DNA of 64,000 nucleotides, taken from IMG/VR virus record IMGVR_UViG_3300002143_000235, positions 1-64,000 of that record; one strand, given 5' to 3'. Made by a program: the position numbers and the translations under genes. Under the pieces are notes generated by a model. It was given only the letters and a program-made list of their open reading frames with translations, did not search any database and had not been told where the DNA came from. This document shows, in pieces, positions 3,335-61,968 of this stretch (the stretch's first letter is position 1; every line of letters starts with the position of its first letter).

Positions 3335-3713
3335 TATAATTTATTTGTGTATTTTCAATTTTTATATATCGACCATCTGTATGAATTGATGCAAATTCCG
3401 GTAATTTATAACCATAAATAAATAATTTATTAACAAATACACATGGTGTAATATCAATTATTTTATCATTCTGTAATATTACAGAATGTTGGATAGCTAA
3501 TAATTCAGTATTTTCTTCATTTGTTAATAAATAGTATCCTAAAATTTTTTCACTATCGTGATTATCATAAATATATTTATTAACATTATTATGACAATCA
3601 TTCATTATGTAATTTGAAGTTAATGGTATATCTAAAATTAAACAATTTTCTGGTTTCATCTTTATAATAAAAGATGAAACCAAAGGAACAGATATTTCAG
3701 CTATTTTCCACAT
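3315..3713 (-). CDS. papain/transglutaminase-like protein with Cys40-His76-Asp87 triad, candidate protein glutamine deamidase
   Basis: DCHNNV..ILGYYLL..AIQHSVIL..KIIDITP; starts 2 nt after the nrdB stop. Confidence 0.55.
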   Translation of the reverse strand: MWKIAEISVPLVSSFIIKMKPENCLILDIPLTSNYIMNDCHNNVNKYIYDNHDSEKILGYYLLTNEENTELLAIQHSVILQNDKIIDITPCVFVNKLFIYGYKLPEFASIHTDGRYIKIENTQINYIDGYVV

Positions 3714-7141: not shown

Positions 7142-7420
7142 AGTTGTTATTATGTTTTAATTATTGTAGTCTTATATATGTGTTGAATTCCTCAAAGTTT
7201 GAGTTCACACCTCTGCATTATGTGGTCAAAAAATATTATTAGTATATTTCAATATCGAAAATTAAAAAGTGTGCCACATATGTAATACATGCATACGTAT
7301 TAGACAAATGCTATGGATTTTGATATATAATAAAAACATTTTAAAAAAATATTTTTCAAAAGCATACCACGGATTAAATATTTTACCTATATTCGTATCG
7401 TTCAATTAATAATTAAGATT

Positions 7421-18476: not shown

Positions 18477-18550
18477 TTTTATTATTTTTCATATATAAAA
18501 GAAAAATTCACGAACATGTTTATATCAATAAATGAATACCGTAAATCAAA
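18467..18550 (+). repeat. promoter plus leader cassette, copy 1 (copy 2 at 18937-19020)
   Basis: tggtgtttaattttattatttttcatatataaaa...aacatgtttRtatcaataaatgaataccgtaaatcaa duplicated. Confidence 0.92.
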
Positions 18551-34729: not shown

Positions 34730-35574
34730 ATCTTTATCATGTACCAATTGAACCAGTAATATACTGGTTTTTTTATATAAATTGTTTTTTCTTTGTAGAT
34801 AGCTTTGATTCTATTTTCATCACTATGAATAACATCAATTGCATCACCCTCTAATATCCTTATGTACTGACCAAGTTCAGTCTGTACAATAATTTCATGT
34901 GCTACAGATCTGTATACACCAGGTTTCACCTTAAACCAATCCTTTATGTGTGACCAGACACGTCCTACAACACGTATTTGAGATTCTTTGTCAAAGCTTT
35001 TCATGTCTGGTGTAACAAACTGTGGTCTATCACCTAGTTCACTATCATTACCAACATTTAAGAATTTACCCCATATTTCATCTTCCATATCGTTTAATTT
35101 GAAACGGATATAGATATTTAAACCAAGTCCATGTGAGCATGGAACCATTTGCATAATACGCAGTCCAGAAATAGTTATTACATCCTGGTCATTCAATGTT
35201 TTCATGTTAAGATAAGCAGCAATACCATTCGGAAACATCTGCTTAATTACCATAGTTGCATTGTGGTAATTTTGTATTGTACTTTTTTTAGAACCTGTTG
35301 GATGAGCACCAAACCGTGCACTCCACGTACTCATTGGATTATTATTAAAATAAATTGCTGCTGGTACTAAACGGTCAGATTTTATATCTGTGTCACCTTG
35401 TTGAATTTTTTTTGATGATTTAGGATTTGGACAAGAATCATCACGCATCCAATCAGGAAGTTCATAATTTGGATCAAAACAAATATCTGTAAAATCAACA
35501 CTATTTGACGTACTACCGTCAAGATAAGGATTAAAATTTTCTAAAACTTGTTTTTTTGTTTGTAAGTACTTCAT
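34726..35574 (-). CDS. hypothetical protein with CTS-like N-terminus
   Basis: MKYLQTKKQVLEN; TGATATATAA upstream. Confidence 0.65.
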   Translation of the reverse strand: MKYLQTKKQVLENFNPYLDGSTSNSVDFTDICFDPNYELPDWMRDDSCPNPKSSKKIQQGDTDIKSDRLVPAAIYFNNNPMSTWSARFGAHPTGSKKSTIQNYHNATMVIKQMFPNGIAAYLNMKTLNDQDVITISGLRIMQMVPCSHGLGLNIYIRFKLNDMEDEIWGKFLNVGNDSELGDRPQFVTPDMKSFDKESQIRVVGRVWSHIKDWFKVKPGVYRSVAHEIIVQTELGQYIRILEGDAIDVIHSDENRIKAIYKEKTIYIKKPVYYWFNWYMIKI

Positions 35575-36570: not shown

Positions 36571-37265
36571 TCTTCACGTGATATACGTTCTCGTTCTTTT
36601 TGTGCTGCAACAATATCATGAATGTTTTGAGTCAATTCTGCTTGACTTACTATCACACGTTTATCTTCTACATTTTTTGTATCTAATTCAGCTGCAATTT
36701 TTTCTTCTTCATTTTCAAATCCGAATGTAGCTGCATAATTTTTCCAATATGTATCACATTTGTTAAGTAATGTATCTGTAGCATTCATATTGTTACGAAG
36801 TTCTTGCTGTGCTTTGTTTACAGAATCAAACATTTCTTTACTCGGATCCCCACCGTCAATTGTTTCCTGAAGTTGAATGAGGTTTGCTTCACTAATCTCT
36901 TCCATTAATAATAACCGGGCGTATTTACGTGCATCATTTTGTTGTAAATCTTTTACACGTGGTGCTTCAAGTGTTTTTGGATTTTTGACATATGTCTTAA
37001 TAATATTCAATATTACTTGATCAGCATATCTATTATGATTAGTTTTCTTTTCATCATAATCTATATACTTAATATCTGTAGATGTAGGTAAATCAGACTG
37101 ATCTGCAGTAAACGAAGATGTATCAAACTTATGTGGATCAGAATGTAAAATTGCTTCAAGTTCATCAAGACGCTCTTTAGTAGCTGATATTTTTTTAACT
37201 TTTGGTACGACTGGTTTTGCACCACCACTATTGGCTGGATCTAAAATATTATCGATGTCGCTCAT
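36555..37265 (-). CDS. hypothetical helical protein
   Basis: 236 aa ORF. Confidence 0.65.
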   Translation of the reverse strand: MSDIDNILDPANSGGAKPVVPKVKKISATKERLDELEAILHSDPHKFDTSSFTADQSDLPTSTDIKYIDYDEKKTNHNRYADQVILNIIKTYVKNPKTLEAPRVKDLQQNDARKYARLLLMEEISEANLIQLQETIDGGDPSKEMFDSVNKAQQELRNNMNATDTLLNKCDTYWKNYAATFGFENEEEKIAAELDTKNVEDKRVIVSQAELTQNIHDIVAAQKERERISREEEEGE

Positions 37266-38563
37266 AATTTATCTGTTTTCTTTGTTAATTTTTTCTTATC
37301 ATCAGTAGCATTTGTATCACCAAATAATGATCCAATTTCTGGATAGACATATCCTTTTGCATCAGTTTCCCATTTAATATTAGGAAACTTAGACATGTCT
37401 GTAAGTTTGCTATAATTTGATAATTTAGTATTAAAATTGAATAATGACTCAACGCGTACTTGAATCTTGCGTACCAACGTATTGAGATGTTCAAGAGCAA
37501 TTTCATTTATAATACCAATTCCTTGTTTGTGCGGTCGCTGAAATGAAGAAAGTAATATTTTTAACAAGTATTCCAATTTAGAATGCATATTAACATTTTG
37601 AATTGTTGTTTTATCCTGAATCAGAGCTTGATTAATACGAAATTTATCAGTATTAAAAAATGCTGGAACAACAAATTTAAACTGTAGTATGTTGTCTCTA
37701 TTTTTTTCAACATACATATTAAATAATTTTGATATTAAATTAATGTATACTAATTCACGTACTGTACCCTGTATTTCAATTGTATCTAAATCTATGGTCA
37801 ATAACCATTGCATAAAATTAAAAAGTAAAATTGAATACACGTCTGAAAATTCAGAATCTGTTTTTAATATCATTTTTTGATATAATGGATTTAATATCTC
37901 CATTGTAATTTCCTGTTGTTCGTTTGTAAAGCGAATAACAATTTTTTCAAGATTATTCTGATATCCTGATGTTTTTAAATATGATGTTTGTGTAAATGGA
38001 TTTAAAATCTTGTAAAAAAATTCAGCGAAATTTGATTCTTTAAATACTAATGATAAATCTTTTTCTGATGTATTTAAAAAGAAATTGATTGCTGAAAGTT
38101 GTTTATCACTCAATCGTCCTTTATAAATAATAGGGAGTGTTTCAACACCGAGCAAATCAGCATAAGTATTTAGTTCGTTTATATCACGTGAATATATTTT
38201 TCCATATTTACAGATACATGTCAAAATTAGGTGATTCTTTGGAATGCGATCATAGCGAATATTTGCTGGTTGTTCATCAGGAAAATATTCGAAACAAAAA
38301 TACATATTTGCACGAATTAAATCTGTTACTTCATTTGGAAGCGAAAGTAAATAAGCCCAAGCCCATTTGTAATATTTTTGTGTAGCTAAATCAATAATAT
38401 TTACTGGTGTTTGGTTGATATTTTTTGGTCGAATATTCCAATTACCGTTTGCATAGTTACACCATATTTTACTTGCTTGTACATCTTCGTACACAACGAT
38501 CTCTTGGTTGGATAGTTTATTGATGAAGACATCGGACTCCATATTAGTATTTCTTAAAATCAT
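37262..38563 (-). CDS. hypothetical protein with degenerate RNA-ligase-like nucleotidyltransferase motifs
   Basis: VYEDVQASKI, FCFEY, LLGVETLPIIYKG, EKIVIR. Confidence 0.4.
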   Translation of the reverse strand: MILRNTNMESDVFINKLSNQEIVVYEDVQASKIWCNYANGNWNIRPKNINQTPVNIIDLATQKYYKWAWAYLLSLPNEVTDLIRANMYFCFEYFPDEQPANIRYDRIPKNHLILTCICKYGKIYSRDINELNTYADLLGVETLPIIYKGRLSDKQLSAINFFLNTSEKDLSLVFKESNFAEFFYKILNPFTQTSYLKTSGYQNNLEKIVIRFTNEQQEITMEILNPLYQKMILKTDSEFSDVYSILLFNFMQWLLTIDLDTIEIQGTVRELVYINLISKLFNMYVEKNRDNILQFKFVVPAFFNTDKFRINQALIQDKTTIQNVNMHSKLEYLLKILLSSFQRPHKQGIGIINEIALEHLNTLVRKIQVRVESLFNFNTKLSNYSKLTDMSKFPNIKWETDAKGYVYPEIGSLFGDTNATDDKKKLTKKTDKL

Positions 38564-49872: not shown

Positions 49873-50412
49873 TTACGAAATAGGAATATTTTTTTCAGTT
49901 GGCAACTGAATCGTCACACTCAGCACACCATTTGCATAGACAGAACTTTCTACTGTTGCACCAATTTCCACCGATGCTTTCAATAAAAAACTAGAATTAT
50001 CTGCAGTTAAATTATCATGATATAATGTAAGGTGTTGTTTACTATGATTAAGAATTAACTCACCCTTTGGAATACCTGGTACAAAAAATTTGATATCATA
50101 ACGATTATTTTTGACTGGTGTTGTATTGATCACAAACGGATTTGGTTGTTCTAAATTAGATTCATCACTTACTGTTACAGAACTTGATTCTGGTTTACAC
50201 ACATCTTTATCATGTAAAACATCCTTAAAAAATTTATCAATGATCTTTTCTATTTGTAATATCATGATATCATTCAAAACAGTATTGTTTGTATTTACCA
50301 TGAATTTACTTTTTACCTTATCAAGAATTGTATTCAATGACGAATTAGGTTTCTTCAATTCTTCACGAATAAAATTTGTAATTTGTTCAATTAATTTGCT
50401 ATCTATTAACAT
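49873..50412 (-). CDS. protein with C-terminal HSP20/alpha-crystallin-like domain
   Basis: YDIKFFVPGIPKGEL..SSVYANGVLSVTIQLP. Confidence 0.55.
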   Translation of the reverse strand: MLIDSKLIEQITNFIREELKKPNSSLNTILDKVKSKFMVNTNNTVLNDIMILQIEKIIDKFFKDVLHDKDVCKPESSSVTVSDESNLEQPNPFVINTTPVKNNRYDIKFFVPGIPKGELILNHSKQHLTLYHDNLTADNSSFLLKASVEIGATVESSVYANGVLSVTIQLPTEKNIPIS

Positions 50413-50459
50413 AATATCTTTTTTACAAATATGCTAATCATATGTCAACCGAAGAAATA

Positions 50460-50675
50460 TCAACTCATATAATTAGCATGGTTGCTCACAGTAAAACACA
50501 ATTCCAATGCATATATAAATTTTCTTATAACATTATCTTTATTTGCATCACTTACAATTGGTCCACCTTTTCCTTTTTCTGTAAACGACATTGTATAGGA
50601 TCTTCCGTCAAAAGCAATAGTAGCATGTTTAACCATCTCCACTCCATCCTTCAACCCAAAAAAGAAATTGGTCAA
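50460..50675 (-). CDS. hypothetical protein
   Basis: 71 aa ORF co-directional with neighbours. Confidence 0.5.
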   Translation of the reverse strand: MTNFFFGLKDGVEMVKHATIAFDGRSYTMSFTEKGKGGPIVSDANKDNVIRKFIYALELCFTVSNHANYMS

Positions 50676-50713
50676 GCACCAAGCCGTTGAAGTAGTAGAT
50701 TATGTCTATAGTT

Positions 50714-51649
50714 TCAAATGTGTTCGTGTTTATTCATATTTTTTCTTTTAAAGCATTTGTTTTCATAAAATTCAGGCATAAAACGTTTCATCCAACCATT
50801 AACTTTTTGATATGGTTTTTCAATCAATTTAGCAACACTTTGTACCCAACCAGTTTTAGAAAAATCAATATTGCTATTAATAATTTTTTCAATTTTTATT
50901 TTTTCAATTTGATTATATATTTCAGTAACTGCTTTATTATAATCATAGCGTTTACCATATTTAGCTTTTGACTTTTTTATTTCTGTATAAAAATATAATC
51001 GATCATCATAATTTTTCATCTTAGATGTACCTATAAAATCTAAAAATTCAGCAATTTTTAGATTTATATCATCATCATAGCGAATTCTAAAAATTCGCCA
51101 ACCTTGTTCTGTTAAATACAAATCACGTTTTATATCATGTTCTACTCTTTTATTACCATTAATAAAATGACATTTACCGTCTAACTCAACTGCGACTTTT
51201 TCATTTATAAATGCAAAATCAATAAAATATGGAAATACACAATATTCAGATACAACATCATATTTTTTAAATATATCAATAGCTGTAGCCTTATCAAAAA
51301 AAGATGATTCTAAAAAAGACATTTGTCCTAAACTTCTTCTTTCCCAAGCTGTTTTACCAGTACGTTTTTTTAAATAATCAACTCGTTTAATTCGCATTTT
51401 TTCGCGTGTTTCATCGGTAATAATTATTTGTGATCTAAGTTTTTTATAACAATTATTATCACCACATGTTTTATTAAAACTAATTCCACCACGATGTGAA
51501 CATAATTTATTACATATTGTACATTTTGGAATCACAAAATTTTCATATTGCTGATAATATTCCAAAACTGAAATATCATATCTTTTTAAATATTGTGTTA
51601 AAGCTTTAATACTAATTAATTCTTTATTATCTATTTTACAAAATACCAT
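50714..51649 (-). CDS. DUF559/Vsr-like putative homing endonuclease with Zn-finger N-terminus
   Basis: CTIC..TCG..C; YFIDFAF..VAVELDGKCH..HDIKRD..GWRIFRI; adjacent to tRNA cluster. Confidence 0.75.
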   Translation of the reverse strand: MVFCKIDNKELISIKALTQYLKRYDISVLEYYQQYENFVIPKCTICNKLCSHRGGISFNKTCGDNNCYKKLRSQIIITDETREKMRIKRVDYLKKRTGKTAWERRSLGQMSFLESSFFDKATAIDIFKKYDVVSEYCVFPYFIDFAFINEKVAVELDGKCHFINGNKRVEHDIKRDLYLTEQGWRIFRIRYDDDINLKIAEFLDFIGTSKMKNYDDRLYFYTEIKKSKAKYGKRYDYNKAVTEIYNQIEKIKIEKIINSNIDFSKTGWVQSVAKLIEKPYQKVNGWMKRFMPEFYENKCFKRKNMNKHEHI

Positions 51650-51700
51650 GTTTTACTTTTATATATCAAACTTTAATTATCAGTCAATGCCATGATTTTG

Positions 51701-51787
51701 TTATCCAGGTAGGGCTCGAACCTACAGTGGGATTACTCCTCTCTTCCGATTCAAAGTCGGACGTGTTGCCAATTACACCACTGGATA
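51701..51787 (-). tRNA. tRNA-Gln(UUG) with long variable arm
   Basis: TATCCAG/CTGGATA acceptor (U1-A72), TCCGA-CTTTGAA-TCGGA, 19-nt variable region, GTAGG-TTCGAGC-CCTAC. Confidence 0.88.
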
Positions 51788-51840
51788 ATTTAATATTTTT
51801 TATTGTAACACCACGTGATGCCATTTCACTAATCAACAAT

Positions 51841-51870
51841 AAAAAAAGCCGTTCAATTTTGAACGGCTTT
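51841..51870 (-). terminator. attenuator terminator upstream of tRNA-Gln
   Basis: AAAGCCGTTCAA-AA-TTGAACGGCTTTTTTT on minus strand. Confidence 0.85.
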
Positions 51871-51897
51871 AGTAAACTTTAAAGAATACAATACCAT

Positions 51898-51951
51898 TCA
51901 ATCCGAAAATTGTTGCTGTTGAAGTTGTTGGTATGTGCTCATTAATGTCAT
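51898..51951 (-). promoter_or_regulatory. Gln-rich leader peptide MTLMSTYQQLQQQQFSD*
   Basis: 6 Gln codons (5 CAA, 1 CAG) in 7 positions; TTGAATGGT across the stop is complementary to terminator arm GCCGTTCAA. Confidence 0.8.
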
Positions 51952-51961
51952 AATCGTTCTT

Positions 51962-52357
51962 TTAAAAATTATTCTTGTTATTAAATAGCTGATAGTCATA
52001 TGACAAGAATGCATATGTCTTTGCTTTATTATAAATACTAATCCTAGTATCATTTACTTCTTCAATTGTTGGTGATTCTGATAACAGATATCTACTTACC
52101 CAATCTGCTATTGGAATTGCCTGAATATTAAATTGTGCCACACTCCATTCCTGTCTTGTGTAAACTATAGGTGCATCATCCAATCTTCCTTCAAAAAGCA
52201 TGAAAAACTGTCGGTAATCGAAAGAATTATCATACGATGCTGGAAGCGGTGGATTTGAACTAATTTCAGGATAAAAAGTTTTTGAAGTCAAAATCTTTAT
52301 AATCTGTTGTTTATCAGCCAATGTTGCGCCGGTAATTTTAAAATATCTACTAGCCAT
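51962..52357 (-). CDS. hypothetical protein
   Basis: 131 aa ORF. Confidence 0.55.
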   Translation of the reverse strand: MASRYFKITGATLADKQQIIKILTSKTFYPEISSNPPLPASYDNSFDYRQFFMLFEGRLDDAPIVYTRQEWSVAQFNIQAIPIADWVSRYLLSESPTIEEVNDTRISIYNKAKTYAFLSYDYQLFNNKNNF

Positions 52358-52404
52358 CTGTGTTTTTTATTTATTGTTATATATTCATCGTCACAAATGA
52401 TTAA

Positions 52405-52797
52405 TTAAACACTATTACGTTTATCAAATAATTTCTGATTGTGTATTCGTTTTTTCTTATCAATTCTGTTTTGAAAATCTAGTAACAATGGTTCAGGAAT
52501 CTTGATGTTACGTGTAGTAAACTCTTTCAAGATTTCCTCTTCAGTAAAAGACCAATCTGCAATCCCGTCACTCCATTCATTTACCCATAAACCCCAACTC
52601 TTTTTTCCTGTCAATACACCTGTTAAGATATTTGAGTGTCTTGTAACAGGAATCTTTCCAAGTTGGTATTCACCATTTTCAATTTTTCTAAAACAAAATT
52701 TTCCGTCGTCCTCGTTTGGATCGAACTCTATCTTGACAGCAGAACCACAGAATGTACAAATACCTGATCTGTATATTTGAAGAAAGAAAGTGAACAT
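52405..52797 (-). CDS. hypothetical protein
   Basis: 130 aa ORF. Confidence 0.55.
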   Translation of the reverse strand: MFTFFLQIYRSGICTFCGSAVKIEFDPNEDDGKFCFRKIENGEYQLGKIPVTRHSNILTGVLTGKKSWGLWVNEWSDGIADWSFTEEEILKEFTTRNIKIPEPLLLDFQNRIDKKKRIHNQKLFDKRNSV

Positions 52798-52897
52798 CTC
52801 ATTGAAACCATCACTGTATTTCTTTAACTTCCTGTGTGTCCTACTGTCGTTTATGCGTCCAGCCTTTTCATCTCTATCATTTTATTTTTAATTTTTG

Positions 52898-52970
52898 TGG
52901 ATGTAAGGTGATTCGAACACCTATCAACATGACCAATACAGCGGTTATTTTACTATTAAAACTATACACC
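52898..52970 (-). pseudogene. tRNA-like gene with distorted anticodon arm (isotype undetermined)
   Basis: GGGTGTA/TACATCC acceptor, AGGTG-TTCGAAT-CACCT T arm, no canonical 5-bp/7-nt anticodon arm. Confidence 0.6.
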
Positions 52971-52981
52971 CATTTATAATG

Positions 52982-53055
52982 TGGAGAAGATGAGAATCGA
53001 ACTCACCACAAAAATCTTGCAAGGATTCTTCGCCAGCCTTGGTACATGCTTCCCC
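52982..53055 (-). tRNA. tRNA-Ala(UGC)
   Basis: GGGGAAG/CTTCTCC with G3:U70, GAATC-CTTGCAA-GATTT, A73. Confidence 0.85.
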
Positions 53056-53093
53056 AATTTCGGTTTTATTTCACAGACCGAAAACTGTCTCAG

Positions 53094-53167
53094 TGCGAGA
53101 AGTGGGACTCAAACCCACAACTCCTGACTTGGAAGGCCAGTACTCTAATCAATTGAGCTATTCTCGC
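53094..53167 (-). tRNA. tRNA-Gly(UCC)
   Basis: GCGAGAA/TTCTCGC, CTGGC-CTTCCAA-GTCAG, GTGGG-TTTGAGT-CCCAC. Confidence 0.9.
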
Positions 53168-53238
53168 AATTTCAATAAACCTCTTTTTGTCTCAATAAAC
53201 TTTAACACTTTATCGTTACAATTTTTACTTTATTGTTG

Positions 53239-53311
53239 TACACCCTGCAGGATTCGAACCTGCGACATCTTCCATGTAAAAGAAGCGCTCTACCAACTGA
53301 GCTAAGGATGC
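53239..53311 (-). tRNA. tRNA-Val(UAC)
   Basis: GCATCCT/AGGGTGT, CTTCT-TTTACAT-GGAAG, GCAGG-TTCGAAT-CCTGC. Confidence 0.92.
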
Positions 53312-53321
53312 ATATCTTTTG

Positions 53322-53392
53322 TACTCTTTGAAGGAATCGAACCTTCTCCCTTAGCATGTCGAGCTAGTATTCTACCGTTAAACCAAAAGAGC
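53322..53392 (-). tRNA. tRNA-Val(GAC), atypical C33
   Basis: GCTCTTT/AAAGAGT, TAGC-TCGACAT-GCTA, GAAGG-TTCGATT-CCTTC. Confidence 0.75.
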
Positions 53393-53400
53393 ATAAAATG

Positions 53401-53428
53401 AAAAAGTCCGGCGGGTTGGCCAGACTTT
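53401..53428 (-). terminator. attenuator terminator upstream of tRNA array
   Basis: AAAGTCTGGC-CAACCC-GCCGGACTTTTT on minus strand, 8 nt before tRNA-Val. Confidence 0.75.
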
Positions 53429-53448
53429 CAAATGTTATTATTTAAATT

Positions 53449-53532
53449 TTAACATAGAATGATCTGGCTGGGAAGTCTCCCGGCTTGGCCTTGCACCGCT
53501 TGTGCTACTACTATGTTAAAAATTGTTTTCAT
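53449..53532 (-). promoter_or_regulatory. leader peptide MKTIFNIVVAQAVQGQAGRLPSQIILC*
   Basis: 11 consecutive codons are all Val/Ala/Gln/Gly; GCCAGAT can pair with terminator arm GTCTGGC; promoter TATATTTG at 53585. Confidence 0.7.
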
Positions 53533-53642
53533 GTTTATTATATTGTATATATCAAGAAAGTTTGTTCCTTCTATCAATTTTTTACAAATATACGTCTTAT
53601 TTTTTAATTAACGAAATATATTTGCATTTTTTTATTAATTAA

Positions 53643-54200
53643 TCATGATACGACCCATGCATTTCCATATGTCTTGCATATAGCTCGGCATCGTTCTAAA
53701 AATTCATTAAACTCCTCATCAGAATTAAATTCTTCAGAATTATCAAAAGCATCAGAAAAATGTCGTGACAATACGTTATTGGCCCAATCGTAATCTTTAC
53801 CTTCAGCAATGTGCATATCTATATCAATTACACCATCATATTGAAGTGCCACCACTTTAGCCAACAATAGACTTAATTCATAGGCATCTGTTACTAATCC
53901 TGTCTGTGCTGATTTTGCAGGTGACATAACTTTAAAAGATTCATTCATCCATTTTTCTTTTGGATTTTTGATATCAAGTTTATCAAGTTCTTTTTCAGTT
54001 ACAACTTTGTAATTTTTATCACCATCGAAATCTTTTAATGCATCTTTTGCATCATTTTTAAATTCCCATCCTGATTCAACTTTCTTTTTAGAAATATTAA
54101 CTACAAAGAATTTATAAGCTTCAACGTCTTTCTTGTATTGTTTATCAGCCTTCTTTCCTTCATTTATGAATTGCTTAAACTGATTAAATTCTGTTATCAT
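53643..54200 (-). CDS. putative head-internal two-module protein (true start 54200)
   Basis: MITEFNQFKQFINEG; internal WMNES; TATATAA at 54223. Confidence 0.7.
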   Translation of the reverse strand: MITEFNQFKQFINEGKKADKQYKKDVEAYKFFVVNISKKKVESGWEFKNDAKDALKDFDGDKNYKVVTEKELDKLDIKNPKEKWMNESFKVMSPAKSAQTGLVTDAYELSLLLAKVVALQYDGVIDIDMHIAEGKDYDWANNVLSRHFSDAFDNSEEFNSDEEFNEFLERCRAICKTYGNAWVVS

Positions 54201-54237
54201 ATAGTTTATTGGTATCTTTTTTATTATATAGTATTTA

Positions 54238-55242
54238 TCAGAAATAAGTACGTGGTTCGATGATGATTCCAAGCTTTGGAATAGATTTTGTCTTCTCCTT
54301 GCTGTAGAAATTGAATTTAACAATCGGTCCCATGAAATGAAATTCTGCACCGTCTTCAAGATTAAATGCATCAATCAATTGTTTGTACTCTTCATTCGCG
54401 ATCTTTGGTGAAATAATAAATCTATCACCTGGTTTAAGTTCCATTGGTTTTAATGTATTTTCAAACTCAAGACTGAATTTTCTTGAACTTCCTTTTTCAT
54501 CAATAACAAGACGACGAATTTTCTTTTTCTTTGGACCTTCAGGATAGTTAACCAAAATCTCCATACCATCATAAATCACAAATTCTTTATTCGGTACAAG
54601 TTTCTTTAATTCCATTGGAATAGCTGTTGGTGAATATATAGCAGCTTTTGGTTGATTTTTGTTTTCTTCAGCATTTAATTCTTTTTCTGCTGGTGTTAAC
54701 ATTGTGTCTGGATTATTCTTAAGATTAACAGCAGGGTAAAGTTTTGCAAACTCAATATCAGTAATATCTAAATCAATAATTGTATTCTTACGTTTACGAT
54801 CATCAAATGATAAAACATTCATATCAATATCACGAAGCTGCTTGAGTTCCTTTGCATCATGCGCAAGTATTTTATTATAAATATCTCGGTTACTAAATGA
54901 AAAAGGATAAAGTAATAATGTTACCACTGTCTGATTCACAACAAGTGCAACATAAACATTACCAACACTCTTATCAATTTGAATTTCTGCTTGAATTAAT
55001 CTACCACCTTGACGAAAATAAAGATTTCCAAATGTTATAGCTATCGGTGAAATGGCTGTTGCTGTCTTATCTAATATATTCAATCCATAATGATACATTG
55101 CCTTACGGAAACGGTACTCAGCTTTTTGTGGATCATCCAACTTATTTAAAATTACTGCGTTACGTATTCTAAGACTAAAACGGTTATCACTATCATATGC
55201 ATAATGCTTAGAGAAGAAGAATTCGTTAATGGATGTAATCAT
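54238..55242 (-). CDS. leader-family protein (likely start 55242)
   Basis: MITSINEFFFS. Confidence 0.65.
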   Translation of the reverse strand: MITSINEFFFSKHYAYDSDNRFSLRIRNAVILNKLDDPQKAEYRFRKAMYHYGLNILDKTATAISPIAITFGNLYFRQGGRLIQAEIQIDKSVGNVYVALVVNQTVVTLLLYPFSFSNRDIYNKILAHDAKELKQLRDIDMNVLSFDDRKRKNTIIDLDITDIEFAKLYPAVNLKNNPDTMLTPAEKELNAEENKNQPKAAIYSPTAIPMELKKLVPNKEFVIYDGMEILVNYPEGPKKKKIRRLVIDEKGSSRKFSLEFENTLKPMELKPGDRFIISPKIANEEYKQLIDAFNLEDGAEFHFMGPIVKFNFYSKEKTKSIPKLGIIIEPRTYF

Positions 55243-56930: not shown

Positions 56931-59900
56931 ATGGCAAAGGAAAAAAGCATTGAAGATGTTTACAAAAAACTCTCACAGGAAGAACACGTATTAGTAAGAC
57001 CTGATACCTATGTAGGTTCAGTAATACCACAAGAAAAAATGATGTGGTGCTACGAAAACGATGCAATTATAAAAAGAAACGTGCGGTATATTCCAGCATT
57101 TTTAAAATTATTTGATGAGATTCTTACAAATGCTTCTGACCATGTACAACGTGGTGGAAAAGTAAAAAATATTAAGGTAAACATTACAGATGATTGGAAA
57201 ATCACCGTATGGAATGATGGAACGGGTATTCCTGTTGTTTTACATAAAGAACACAATGTCTATATTCCTGAATTAATTTTTGGTCACTTATTAACTGGAT
57301 CTAATTATGATGATGATGATGAGCGTTTTGGTGCGGGTCGTAATGGTCTTGGATCTAAACTTGTATCAATATTCTCAAAAGAATTTGTTATTGATTGTGC
57401 AGACGGAAAGAAACATTACTTTCAAACATTTAGTAACAACCTTGCTATCAAATCTGTGCCTGAAATAAAAGCAAGTAAACAATCATATACATCTATTTCA
57501 TATCTAACTGATTTTGATCGTTTACCAATCAAGGGATTGGAACGTGACACACTTGCACTTTGTATGAAACGTATGCTTGATATTGCTGTATACAATCCTA
57601 CAGTTAATGTGTATTTCAATGATGAATTGATTAAAATTAATAATCTTGCAGACTGGTGTCAGATGCACATCGATAATGATGACGAATTGTTTTTAGAGAC
57701 TGTAAATGATAGATGGTCAATTGGTCTTGCTCAATCTAAATCAGATGTGTTTGATCACTGTTCTATTGTTAATGGTAACACGACATGGCAAGGGGGAACA
57801 CATGTTGATGCTATTATGAATCAAGTTGTAAAGAAACTTGTTGAAGACCTTACAAAAGGAAATAAAGGTATCAAGATTAAACCAGTTGATGTAAAAAATA
57901 AGTTTCATTTATTTTTGGTTTGTAAAGTAGCAAACCCAACTTTTGATACACAAACAAAAGAAAACTTAACTATCAAGATTCAGGATAAATTTGAACTTTC
58001 TGAGAAGTTGTACAAACAACTCATGAAGTCAGAAATTATTAAATCTATTATTGAGTGGGTTCAATTACGTGAACAGGCTGAATTAAACAAACTGAATAAA
58101 AAATCTGCTGGTAAGACAGTACGTATTGAAAAACTTGTTGATGCACACAAAGCAGGAACAAATGAAGGTCACAAATGTTCAATTATTTTAGCTGAAGGTG
58201 ACTCAGCTCTTCAATCTGTACTTTCAGGTTTATCTGTTGTTGGTCGTGATTATTTTGGTGTCTTTCCACTCAAGGGTAAAGTATTGAATGTTCGTGATGT
58301 TAAAATAAGTCGTATAACAGACAACGAAGAAATTAGAAAGATCTTACAATTTATTGGACTTGTTCCAGGTAAAAAATATGAATCACTAAGTGAACTTCGT
58401 TATGGACGTGTTATATTCATGACGGATGCCGATGTCGATGGAACTTCAATTAAAGGACTACTTATCAACTTCATTCATAATTTTTGGCCGGAGCTTCTTG
58501 AGCTTGGATTCTGTTTTGAGTTCATTACACCGATCGTGGTTGCACGAAAAGCAAAACTAGTAAAAGAATACTACAACTTATCAAACTATCACACAGACAA
58601 AGAAAATGGTAAACTGAACGGCTACACGATTAAATATTATAAAGGTCTTGGAACAATTAAAGGTGAAGAGATTAAAATCATGTTCAAGGATTTGAACAAA
58701 CACCTTATTCCGTTTGAATACAATGCAATTCGTGACAATGATAAAATTGACATGGTATTTAGAAAAGATCGTGCAAACGATCGTCGTGAATGGTTGCTTG
58801 GTTACAAAGGTGAGATCATTCCAGACAAGTTTGGAAAATCAAATCGCATTGATGAATTTATCGATACAGAATTCATTCAGTTCTCGAATGCTGATAACAT
58901 TCGTTCTATTCCAGGAATGATTGATGGATTTAAACCATCACAACGTAAGATCATGTTTGCAGCTTTTAAGAAGCTTGGACATACAGAGCGAGATGAAATC
59001 AAGGTAGCACAATTTGGTGCTTACACAGCTGAGGTGAGTAGTTACCATCACGGTGAGGTATCATTGATGCAAGCAATTGTTGGAATGGCACAGGATTTTG
59101 TAGGAGCAAACAATCTTTCACTATTAATGCCATCTGGTCAATTTGGAACAAGAACAAATCCAAGTGCAAGTGCAAGTCCTCGTTATATTTTTACATACTT
59201 GAATCCGTTAACACGTTACATATTCAGAAAAGAAGATGATTCAATCTTGAATTACCTCAATGAAGATGGTCAGAATATTGAACCAGAATTTTATCTTCCT
59301 ATTATTCCAATGCTTTTGGTTAATGGTGCAGCAGGGATTGGTACAGGGTGGTCAACAGACATTCCAAAATACGATCCAATGGATCTCATCGAAATTGTAA
59401 AACGTAAACTTGTTAAGGAAAACTTAAAATATCAAGTTAGTCCATCATATAAAGGTTGGAAAGGTGAATTAGATTGGAATGAAGAAAAAAATAGTTATAC
59501 ATCAAAAGGAATATTTAAAACATCTAAGAAAGGTGTAATTGTTACAGAATTACCGATTGATATATCAACTGACAAATTCATCGCAACACTTGACAAATTA
59601 GTTGATGAAAAAAAGATTAAATCATATATTGATAACTCTACAGATACAACAGTTAATGTCGAGGTTGTTTTAAATGGTGTGAGCAAAGATGTTGCAGGGT
59701 TGCTAAAATTAAGTAACAGTATCTCAATGAATAACATGAACACTTTCTTGGATAACAAGATTGTGAAGTGGACAACAACTGAAGACATGATTAACACATG
59801 GATTGATATCAGACTTAGTTGGTACGAAAAGCGTAAGATTCAATGGATGAGTGTTTTGGAACAACAGTTTGATCGTTACGATAATTTGCTTGGATTTATC

Positions 59901-60179
59901 AAGGGTGTAATTGATGGTGAAATTTTAATCAATAATCGAAAGAAAGACGTGATTATAAAAGATCTTGAAACAATGGACTTTATGAAAATTAATGATAGTT
60001 ATGATTACCTCTTGAACATCCCAGTTTATCACTTTACGACTGAAAAGTTTGATGAATACAAAAAGATGGCAAAAAATATGCGATTAGAACTTAAAGAATA
60101 CAAATTGATGAATCCTGCTGATATATGGCAGAAAGATTTAAAGGAACTTGAAGAACAACTGATTAAGGCTGGTTATTAA
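56931..60179 (+). CDS. type IIA DNA topoisomerase, single-chain (B+A fused)
   Basis: RPDTYVGS, GRNGLG, AEGDSA, PLKGK, MTDADVDG, YYKGLGT, DGFKPSQRK, YHHGE, catalytic SPRYIFT. Confidence 0.96.
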   Translation: MAKEKSIEDVYKKLSQEEHVLVRPDTYVGSVIPQEKMMWCYENDAIIKRNVRYIPAFLKLFDEILTNASDHVQRGGKVKNIKVNITDDWKITVWNDGTGIPVVLHKEHNVYIPELIFGHLLTGSNYDDDDERFGAGRNGLGSKLVSIFSKEFVIDCADGKKHYFQTFSNNLAIKSVPEIKASKQSYTSISYLTDFDRLPIKGLERDTLALCMKRMLDIAVYNPTVNVYFNDELIKINNLADWCQMHIDNDDELFLETVNDRWSIGLAQSKSDVFDHCSIVNGNTTWQGGTHVDAIMNQVVKKLVEDLTKGNKGIKIKPVDVKNKFHLFLVCKVANPTFDTQTKENLTIKIQDKFELSEKLYKQLMKSEIIKSIIEWVQLREQAELNKLNKKSAGKTVRIEKLVDAHKAGTNEGHKCSIILAEGDSALQSVLSGLSVVGRDYFGVFPLKGKVLNVRDVKISRITDNEEIRKILQFIGLVPGKKYESLSELRYGRVIFMTDADVDGTSIKGLLINFIHNFWPELLELGFCFEFITPIVVARKAKLVKEYYNLSNYHTDKENGKLNGYTIKYYKGLGTIKGEEIKIMFKDLNKHLIPFEYNAIRDNDKIDMVFRKDRANDRREWLLGYKGEIIPDKFGKSNRIDEFIDTEFIQFSNADNIRSIPGMIDGFKPSQRKIMFAAFKKLGHTERDEIKVAQFGAYTAEVSSYHHGEVSLMQAIVGMAQDFVGANNLSLLMPSGQFGTRTNPSASASPRYIFTYLNPLTRYIFRKEDDSILNYLNEDGQNIEPEFYLPIIPMLLVNGAAGIGTGWSTDIPKYDPMDLIEIVKRKLVKENLKYQVSPSYKGWKGELDWNEEKNSYTSKGIFKTSKKGVIVTELPIDISTDKFIATLDKLVDEKKIKSYIDNSTDTTVNVEVVLNGVSKDVAGLLKLSNSISMNNMNTFLDNKIVKWTTTEDMINTWIDIRLSWYEKRKIQWMSVLEQQFDRYDNLLGFIKGVIDGEILINNRKKDVIIKDLETMDFMKINDSYDYLLNIPVYHFTTEKFDEYKKMAKNMRLELKEYKLMNPADIWQKDLKELEEQLIKAGY

Positions 60180-61900: not shown

Positions 61901-61968
61901 ACATTATATAGATAAAATTGACAATCTATTTTCAATGTTTTGATATATAAAAAAAATGTTTCAAATAG

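Follow-up and report, generated by a model that had tools for sequence, protein, structure and literature searches.

A predicted ribosome-mediated attenuator with a glutamine-codon leader precedes a phage tRNA-Gln gene and likely belongs to a widespread family

Results

A glutamine-rich leader ORF and an intrinsic terminator precede tRNA-Gln

The DNA analysed here, a stretch of 64,000 nucleotides that we call the window, is part of the 313.7-kb viral contig IMGVR_UViG_3300002143_000235, which carries phage hallmark genes and a fused topoisomerase II whose nearest matches come from uncultured huge phages (636-735 kb). Searches of GenBank phages with positions 50500-54000 of the window (megablast and blastn) returned tRNA matches only and no near DNA relative. 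The Bacteroidota -7 box type TATATTTG was not enriched in the window (12 observed vs 11 expected), therefore the host could not be assigned from that box. On the minus strand, where all features described below lie, the locus reads 5' to 3' as a promoter-like region, a 27-codon ORF, a terminator, five tRNAs, two genes, a glutamine (Gln) unit and, 3' of tRNA-Gln, a DUF559-type endonuclease gene (51649-50714). The two genes are of unknown function, encode proteins of 130 aa (52797-52405) and 131 aa (52357-51962), and lie in the same orientation between what we interpret below as two attenuators; their homologues hold the same position in relatives. Neither protein had a function or family match in PHROG or Pfam, and tblastn of the 131-aa neighbour protein against GenBank phages gave zero matches.

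The Gln unit opens with a leader ORF of 17 codons plus TGA (51951-51898; ATG at 51951, stop at 51900-51898) that reads MTLMSTYQQLQQQQFSD. Its codons 8-14 (51930-51910) form the run CAA CAA CTT CAA CAG CAA CAA, with Gln at six of the seven positions. Given the 3.5% Gln background of the window's long ORFs, where CAA makes up 75% of Gln codons, the probability of at least six Gln in 16 codons is 1e-5. No Shine-Dalgarno sequence was found before the Gln leader, the region upstream being merely A-rich. Because the leader begins only 10 nt past the stop of the 131-aa gene, we regard the Gln unit as an operon-internal attenuator.

Downstream of the leader lies an intrinsic terminator (51870-51841) consisting of AAAGCCGTTCA-AAAT-TGAACGGCTTT and 7 T in all (5' arm 51870-51860, loop 51859-51856, 3' arm 51855-51845, T run 51847-51841; -15.5 kcal/mol). 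A putative antiterminator strand, TTGAATGGT (51901-51893; segment 2, also written UUGAAUGGU), spans the TGA stop and pairs with GCCGTTCAA (51867-51859) through 7 Watson-Crick and 2 G-U pairs. This duplex is predicted at -10.1 kcal/mol (z = -2.4, p = 0.02, 1000 dinucleotide shuffles), which is modest against the -15.5 kcal/mol of the terminator and counts against the window's own copy of the switch. Further structure is predicted around the ORF. A long, imperfect helix, P1 (51949-51875; 5' strand 51949-51921, 3' strand 51904-51875), encloses it, appears in both the MFE and the centroid folds, and is seen in most relatives; the whole leader fold, P1 followed by the terminator, has z = -3.8 and beats 200/200 shuffles. 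A conserved AACAUA in the region encoding the leader N-terminus pairs with UAUGUU near the stop. In addition, a local hairpin, CAAUU-UUCG-GAUUG (51912-51899), pairs the last Gln codon with the start of the antiterminator strand and has counterparts in two relatives (CAAUC-UUCG-GAUUG in L121; CAACAAU-AUC-AUUGUUG in L125). It could be the 1:2 element of a classical attenuator, a function that we infer only from its sequence.

The surviving tRNA-Gln follows a truncated sister gene

The tRNA-Gln(UUG) gene (51787-51700, 88 nt; found by ARAGORN and scored as tRNA by Rfam at 60 bits) begins 57 nt past the terminator and has an unpaired 14-nt insert in its variable region. The spacer before it is filled by what is left of another tRNA-Gln gene, a 32-nt remnant (51838-51807) that retains only the 5' half, breaks off in the anticodon loop and differs little from the corresponding part of the second tRNA-Gln in relative L125. 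Since the insert is unusual and the sister copy truncated, the window's own Gln unit may be decaying, and it looks partly decayed. Overlapping the remnant is a promoter-like site (51829-51802; GTGAAA-16-TACAAT, 9/12 plus TG). We considered its TGtTACAAT as the tRNA's own promoter and dropped it, as most of it lies inside the tRNA remnant, and the relatives have no such remnant as a spacer; independent transcription of tRNA-Gln nonetheless remains conceivable in the window.

A first-pass annotation of this stretch had described the 17-codon ORF with its CAA CAA CTT CAA CAG CAA CAA run, a 9-bp antiterminator pairing, and a terminator with 7 U followed by tRNA-Gln(UUG). The ORF held on the minus strand at 51951-51898, the pairing of 51901-51893 with 51867-51859 held as 7 Watson-Crick plus 2 G-U pairs, and the terminator and tRNA held as well. 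What it had missed was the 57-nt spacer with its tRNA remnant, the 88-nt length of the tRNA with the 14-nt insert, and the position of the leader 10 nt behind the 131-aa gene.

The Gln unit is conserved in relatives and its helices vary in step

Relatives were found through homologues of the 131-aa protein, at loci from other metagenomes. The ORF with its Gln run, the terminator and tRNA-Gln are all retained in nine distinct relatives (L121, L002, L125, L128/L130/L131, L119, L134, L136, L138 and L139; 45-85% identity in the neighbour protein). Thus 10/10 distinct versions (window included; 45-100% identity) have an ATG ORF, a terminator and 1-3 tRNA-Gln(UUG) genes. The leaders contain 3-7 Gln codons each (5-7 in 9/10 versions; only 3 in L002), and in relatives the ATG ORF lies 7-13 nt past the neighbour gene. 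Their peptides include MKTLNTNQQLQQQQSSD, MINNNTYQNILTQQQQYHC, MKNINNNLQYLQQQQNYC and MKKLNTYKQQQQQLYDC, and further MMMNTNTTNNQQNQQQQSHCC..., MKNYILDIQQDQFQQQQSHCC..., MKNLNNIQQCQQQQSK... and MKNNNTYQNILSQQYNIAEWN. A separate search with a 17-mer from the tRNA-Gln D-arm was rejected as a finder of relatives: it retrieved 116 mostly unrelated viral loci, among which only L002 was a true relative.

The terminator stems vary among the relatives, and the strand around the stop codon varies in step. A 5' arm GCCGUUCAA is found with the upstream strand UUGAAUGG, CCCGUUUAA with UUGAGCGGG, CCGUUAA with UUAACGG, and AAAGCCGUA with UGCGGCUUU. In a MAFFT alignment (A2), 84% of antiterminator cells were paired vs 18-47% for slid-partner controls, and the covariation was weak (21/500 shuffles reached the observed score). 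MAFFT misaligned segment 2 in several Gln leaders, therefore the pair counts for the Gln unit understate the pairing. For the terminator itself, 94% of cells were paired across relatives and 6 pairs had changed on both sides.

These comparisons bear on a simpler explanation, in which the hairpin merely ends the upstream protein operon, tRNA-Gln is transcribed from a separate promoter, and the small ORF either arose by chance or encodes an unrelated micropeptide. Its support is that the leader sits 10 nt behind the 131-aa gene and that, in the window, a promoter-like site lies between terminator and tRNA. Against it, that site sits in the tRNA remnant, and in relatives tRNA-Gln begins about 5-12 nt past the U-run; such a gap leaves no room for a promoter, therefore the relatives' tRNA-Gln would be made only by read-through. 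Moreover, the leader is missing in L137, a natural negative control in which the neighbour gene is present without tRNA-Gln. The survey described below adds that leader composition follows the downstream tRNAs across 44 units in a frame- and position-specific manner. We consider the plain-terminator reading very unlikely.

Two further units lie on the same contig

Upstream of the two protein genes, the 27-codon ORF (53532-53449) is a second leader, reading MKTIFNIVVAQAVQGQAGRLPSQIILC, with Val, Ala, Gly and Gln regulatory codons at 53511-53479. Its terminator (about 53429-53398) ends 10 nt before tRNA-Val(GAC) (53392-53322), which is followed by tRNA-Val(UAC) (53311-53239), tRNA-Gly(UCC) (53167-53094), tRNA-Ala(UGC) (53055-52981) and, last in the cluster (53392-52897), an aberrant tRNA (52971-52897). 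The leader is kept in 10/10 relatives with the core N-I-Q-(V/A)-V-(A/G)-G-Q-(A/G)-Q-A-G. Its antiterminator strand, AGCCAGAUC (53469-53461), is predicted to pair at -11.0 kcal/mol (z = -2.3). In alignment A3, in which L134 and L138 are one column off, 79% of antiterminator cells were paired vs 18-54% for slid partners, 4 pairs had changed on both sides, and the covariation score was 0.35 vs 0.20 +/- 0.04, a value reached by 0/500 shuffles. The terminators of this unit fall into three sequence types with which the upstream strand covaries (91% of terminator cells paired; 5 pairs changed on both sides). From its sequence, we infer that the window holds two predicted switches in series within one operon, and the Gln codons of the second unit's leader fit the presence of tRNA-Gln at the distal end of that transcription unit.

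A third unit on the same contig (L120/L158) has a Ser/Arg leader ORF, MKTITNISSSSRSRRSSSRRSGYVLSEVF, in which UCUGAGGUUUU is complementary to the 5' arm of the terminator that follows. Its cluster comprises tRNA-Ser(UGA), Ser(GCU), Arg(UCU), Arg(ACG) and Arg(UCG), and under simple wobble rules all Ser/Arg codons of the regulatory run (leader codons 8-21) can be read by these five tRNAs; the exception in the leader is one UCU near the ORF end, which is unreadable by the cluster tRNAs. A tRNA-Ser(AGA) called over the terminator region by relaxed ARAGORN was taken as spurious.

Leader codons match the downstream tRNAs across phage clusters

We surveyed all loci fetched, including the 116 retrieved with the D-arm 17-mer, using a composition-blind scanner that required a tRNA with a terminator-like hairpin at most 40 nt upstream and took the longest ATG ORF whose end lay near the stem. 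This yielded 42-44 distinct leaders, most in contigs unrelated to the window. The fraction of residues cognate to the leader's own cluster was 0.30, vs 0.16 +/- 0.014 with permuted clusters (0/10,000), and at the codon level with simple wobble it was 0.25 vs 0.13 permuted (0/10,000); the sequences in these permutation tests are not phylogenetically independent. Codons readable by the cluster's own tRNAs made up 25% in the ORF frame vs 7.5% and 7.3% in the two alternative frames (p ~ 1e-8; 44 leaders). They were also confined in position, with cognate codons at 32-55% per position for codons 8-17, <=18% for codons 2-7 and mostly <=10% after codon 22. Measured from the antiterminator strand, cognate codons lie at offsets of -13 to -4 codons and drop at -3 to 0, so that they end 3-4 codons before segment 2, which equals the 3' reach of the ribosome footprint.

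A single leader may contain up to 16 codon types, all within one conserved frame that has an ATG and a stop. A cluster of 16 tRNAs (F,K,W,R,C,S,I,V,N,Y,G,A,M,H,T,Q) is preceded by the leader MKNCSKHNINRMISQINGCYQTVAFWAKGK..., a Tyr,Glu,Ile,Gly,Ala cluster by MRTIINIEAIGYAYEAG..., and a Gln,Asp,Pro cluster by ...QVNPQPQDQDP.... On a 54% GC contig, a Trp,Gln(CUG),His,Arg(CCG),Arg(ACG) cluster follows the leader ...SRKHQRRNNRW..., in which CAG and CGG are used. Matching thus reaches the isoacceptor, with CAG and CGG in the L088 leader set against tRNA-Gln(CUG) and tRNA-Arg(CCG) in its cluster and, as a further case, AGA in a leader whose cluster holds tRNA-Arg(UCU). The pairing of terminator 5' arm and own upstream strand was significant (z < -2) in 30/47 units; by this crude duplex test the remaining 17/47 had no significant antiterminator. 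Own terminator arms averaged -11.1 kcal/mol vs -6.9 for non-cognate arms. Among bacterial loci retrieved with the 21-mer ATGAAAACAATTNNNAACATA (n = 120, many Bacteroidota; few tRNAs in the sample), a short ORF followed by tRNAs was found in none.

Two other readings can be judged from these data. In the first, the leaders are translated only for ribosome-polymerase coupling (e.g. protection from Rho or nucleases) or encode functional peptides, without a codon switch. The conserved leader N-terminus, MKT(I/L)xNI, can be read as peptide conservation in its favour. Yet the AACAUA-UAUGUU pairing explains that N-terminus at the RNA level, the variable peptide core mirrors the tRNA cluster, and intrinsic terminators with covarying antiterminators exist. 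This reading is therefore very unlikely. The second is a translation-independent RNA switch that binds tRNA directly, as a T-box does; T-box elements likewise read a codon and choose between terminator and antiterminator. However, cmscan of window positions 50000-55000 against Rfam (E <= 1) gave only tRNAs and chance-level matches, with no T-box or other leader or riboswitch family. The cognate codons are frame-specific, up to 16 codon types share one conserved ATG-to-stop frame, and the region is far shorter than a T-box. A T-box-like switch is thereby all but excluded.

A cultured phage carries three units

One survey locus (L141) is the Cellulophaga phage phi38:1 (NC_021796.1; host Cellulophaga baltica), whose 22 tRNAs form three clusters; each has a leader and a terminator upstream of it, preceded by a promoter-like box common to all three. 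The leader MKTIMNIATDIRTKGVKLLGRSRVL precedes Lys,Ile,Gly,Met,Asp,Thr,Val,Arg(UCU),Ile(UAU); MKTNMTYNNFSWYSNCSFSSYNVERLYLS precedes Tyr,Ser,Ser,Asn,Trp,Phe,Cys; and MNVTLLHQEPLEQLRLPSRVPYYGIDELS precedes Pro,Glu,Gln,His,Leu,Arg(ACG). The three leaders occupy 35283-35360, 36744-36833 and 37987-38076 of NC_021796.1, and just a few nt separate the promoter-like box from the leader ATG. The first leader is buried in the annotated hypothetical protein gp066, and the other two either lack annotation or coincide in part with other calls. A paper on the phi38:1 infection transcriptome (PMC5335546) makes no mention of leaders or attenuation.

Ribosome masking in silico

To place a stalled ribosome on the leader, we took each codon in turn as the A site, masked the mRNA from -15 to +12 nt relative to its first base, and computed the fold of the transcript as far as the terminator loop. 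In 10/10 Gln versions, the terminator 5' arm was sequestered by the upstream strand for stalls through the last Gln codon, and in 10/10 the antiterminator collapsed 1-3 codons past the Gln run and also with the ribosome at the stop. This pattern, which rests on the model alone, is the arrangement expected if a stall on Gln codons leads to read-through and finished translation leads to termination. The candidates for a 1:2 helix in the window are the predicted UUCG hairpin and P1. In several relatives, the truncated transcript prefers 2:3, folding into the antiterminator even without a ribosome, therefore the default state is ambiguous in silico.

Discussion

Attenuation of tRNA genes

The anatomy of these units, their conservation, the matching of leader codons to downstream tRNAs, the frame and position specificity of that matching, and the covariation of the alternative helices are shown by the comparisons above. 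The reading that best accounts for them, and which we regard as likely, is ribosome-mediated attenuation of the trp/his type controlling tRNA genes; leader translation, the direction of the switch and its trigger are inferred, and we have no experimental data on them. The window's Gln unit is likely one member of a widespread family in which a tRNA cluster is preceded by a leader composed of codons that the cluster reads.

In the proposed mechanism, polymerase arriving from the upstream genes would transcribe the 17-codon leader, whose codons 8-14 are nearly all Gln (CAA/CAG). When Gln-tRNA(Gln) is plentiful, the ribosome would reach the TGA; as the stop lies inside segment 2, a ribosome there would mask segment 2, the terminator hairpin (3:4) would form, and transcription would end before the tRNA. 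When the cognate aminoacyl-tRNA is scarce, the ribosome would stall on the Gln run and open the leader-enclosing helix, leaving segment 2 free to pair with the terminator 5' arm, and polymerase would read through into tRNA-Gln. The outcome would be a negative feedback from decoding capacity onto tRNA supply.

The first-pass annotation had likewise proposed an attenuator architecture on a tRNA gene. Conservation, repeated units and the codon match support this part of the claim, with leader translation and codon-dependent read-through still inferred. It had suggested looking for cognate-codon leaders before tRNA genes in related phages, and these were found in 9 relatives and dozens of loci elsewhere; it had also held that a leader that was not conserved would refute the idea, and the ORF is kept in 10 distinct versions. 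Its proposed trigger, attack by host anticodon nucleases, remains speculation.

A related possibility retains the mechanism and changes the signal: the units may respond to amino-acid starvation or to general translation speed, for example in timing tRNA expression during infection. In the trp and his attenuators it is charged tRNA that is sensed, so lack of the amino acid and lack of the tRNA cannot be told apart. However, leaders match the tRNAs of their own cluster down to the isoacceptor (CAG with Gln(CUG), CGG with Arg(CCG), AGA with Arg(UCU)), and extra tRNA would not ease amino-acid starvation, which makes this signal unlikely. Under attenuation by scarcity of the cognate aminoacyl-tRNA, the natural trigger might be a codon-usage mismatch, late-gene demand, host tRNA degradation or anticodon nucleases, each of which is a possibility only.

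We also entertain, with more doubt than belief, a bolder reading in which modular, codon-barcoded sensors guard every tRNA cluster in several phage lineages, each leader listing the codons of just the tRNAs behind it, so that a cluster is transcribed only when one of its cognate aminoacyl-tRNAs is limiting. The lineages concerned include a jumbo phage of 313 kb, phi38:1 (a Cellulophaga podovirus of 72 kb) and contigs with a GC content of 25-54%. If this reading were true, a phage would notice as it happens that specific host tRNAs are being lost and would make good the loss, whether the cause lay in anticodon nucleases, in breakdown of host tRNAs or in a new host whose codon usage does not fit.

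The finding addresses two open questions, namely how phages regulate their tRNA genes and why they retain particular sets of them. If attenuation is confirmed, it would explain by a direct and testable mechanism how tRNA supply follows demand. The reach of classical attenuation would then widen from enzymes to tRNAs, and these would be the first tRNA genes for which ribosome-mediated attenuation is established. Many small hypothetical proteins and unannotated ORFs beside phage tRNA clusters, gp066 of phi38:1 among them, would be accounted for as well. The leaders could also serve as natural, programmable sensors of single tRNA isoacceptors. Because phi38:1 and Cellulophaga baltica are a cultured pair with three units, the idea can be tested at once.

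Comparison with known systems

To our knowledge, described leader-peptide attenuators do not regulate genes other than those for amino-acid biosynthesis or aminoacyl-tRNA synthetases, whereas the regulated genes here are tRNA genes. We found no report of leader-peptide control of tRNA genes in the literature searched, from which most subscription journals were outside scope.

The closest likeness is to the trp, his, leu, thr and pheA attenuators of Proteobacteria, which have the same short ORF, run of regulatory codons and segment 2 placed to be masked from the stop, and the same mutually exclusive 2:3 and 3:4 helices; for their 1:2 helix, which includes the regulatory codons, the phage units offer predicted candidates only. 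Unlike the trp/his type, the targets here are tRNAs, the units are phage-encoded and match no Rfam leader family, and the Gln unit is operon-internal and not directly behind a promoter. The multivalent ilvGMEDA and thr attenuators share the mixed codons, with shortage of any one relieving termination, but in the phage leaders the mix mirrors the tRNA cluster (up to 16 tRNAs, in L073) and not the end products of a pathway. The pheST attenuator similarly feeds decoding status back onto the translation apparatus; it is cellular and controls a synthetase, while the phage units would control the tRNA itself. T-box riboswitches also sense the status of a specific tRNA through a terminator/antiterminator switch, but they bind tRNA directly without ribosomes by means of a specifier loop and a T-box sequence, neither of which is present here. 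Leaderless poly-Cys short ORFs in mycobacteria act as amino-acid-specific attenuators at or near the transcript 5' end (bioRxiv 10.1101/834739), and they resemble phi38:1 in having a short ORF near the transcript 5' end; they differ in phylum, in targeting Cys metabolism, and in having no tie to tRNA genes. The class of mechanism is therefore textbook, and what is likely new is the tRNA-gene target, the one-to-one match between leader codons and the downstream cluster, and the wide distribution of the arrangement among phages.

Irregular tRNA-Gln genes and adjacent endonucleases

The tRNA-Gln(UUG) gene that follows the Gln-rich leader and its terminator (51700-51787, minus strand) is 88 nt long and carries a 14-nt insert in its variable region, which is left unpaired in the ARAGORN drawing. 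tRNA-Gln is not expected to have a long variable region. In a distant relative, L134, the tRNA-Gln (3526-3612) is 87 nt long, with an insert that differs from the window's and could form a GUUC-AUUA-GAAC hairpin. Immediately 3' of the terminator that follows the Gln-rich leader lies a partial tRNA-Gln gene consisting of the 5' half up to a break in the anticodon loop (51807-51838, minus strand), and a truncated copy resembling this remnant is present in a second relative, L138 (about 3521-3559). Directly after tRNA-Gln, we found a gene whose 311-aa product contains a DUF559 / MTES_1575 endonuclease domain (50714-51649, minus strand); NUMOD3-type ORFs occupy this position in relatives. The tRNA regions of these phages appear to be homing endonuclease targets, which may account for the truncated copy.

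The Val/Ala/Gly leader and its tRNA cluster

Two tRNAs in the Val/Gly/Ala cluster (52981-53055 and 52897-52971, both minus strand) were not called by default ARAGORN. The first is a tRNA-Ala(UGC), identified by Rfam, BLAST and relaxed ARAGORN; the second, which scores 38 bits in Rfam, is aberrant, its anticodon loop being abnormal. Counterparts of this missed stretch (52897-53055) in relatives are Gly(GCC) or Ala. The leader ORF upstream of the cluster draws on several codons seldom used in the genes of the phage itself (GCG, GCC, GGC, GGG and GTG; 53479-53511, minus strand), as though each isoacceptor were sampled. This leader also holds 4 Gln codons, even though tRNA-Gln lies 1.4 kb downstream in the same operon.

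Its MKT(I/L)xNI start (53532-53512) is common to leader peptides of unrelated phages, being found in the loci L120 (from the window's own contig), L141 (Cellulophaga phage phi38:1), L143, L146, L152, L169 and L172. Since leader AACAUA was paired with UAUGUU of the stop region in MFE folds, this conservation could lie at the RNA level, at the base of a helix around the ORF.

Candidate promoter motif, protein families and phi38:1

Allowing <=1 mismatch, TTTTAATATATA occurs at 13 sites in the window (for example 7318-7329, 18486-18497 and 61938-61949) versus 4.6 expected, a count reached by 0/100 shuffles. Because the motif sits upstream of genes in relatives (L125, L136 and L138), we suggest it as a possible phage promoter.

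The family of the 131-aa protein encoded directly upstream of the Gln leader had no match in Pfam or PHROG; at another site in the genome, a paralogue with 45% identity makes up the N-terminal portion of a far longer protein (L120 3001-3354 and onward; L120 is 276913-283266 of the same contig). On the plus strand (56931-60179), one 1082-aa protein combines the large with the medium subunit of phage topoisomerase II. Its closest matches (40-45% identity) are in huge phages that are uncultured and span 636-735 kb (LR756501, LR756503 and LR756504).

In cultured phi38:1 (NC_021796.1), the leader ORFs are hidden or wrongly annotated in the stretches 35253-35360, 36714-36845 and 37894-38076: gp066 has its annotated start at a TTG upstream of the leader ORF, gp067 is called over leader B on the opposite strand, and gp070 overlaps leader C.
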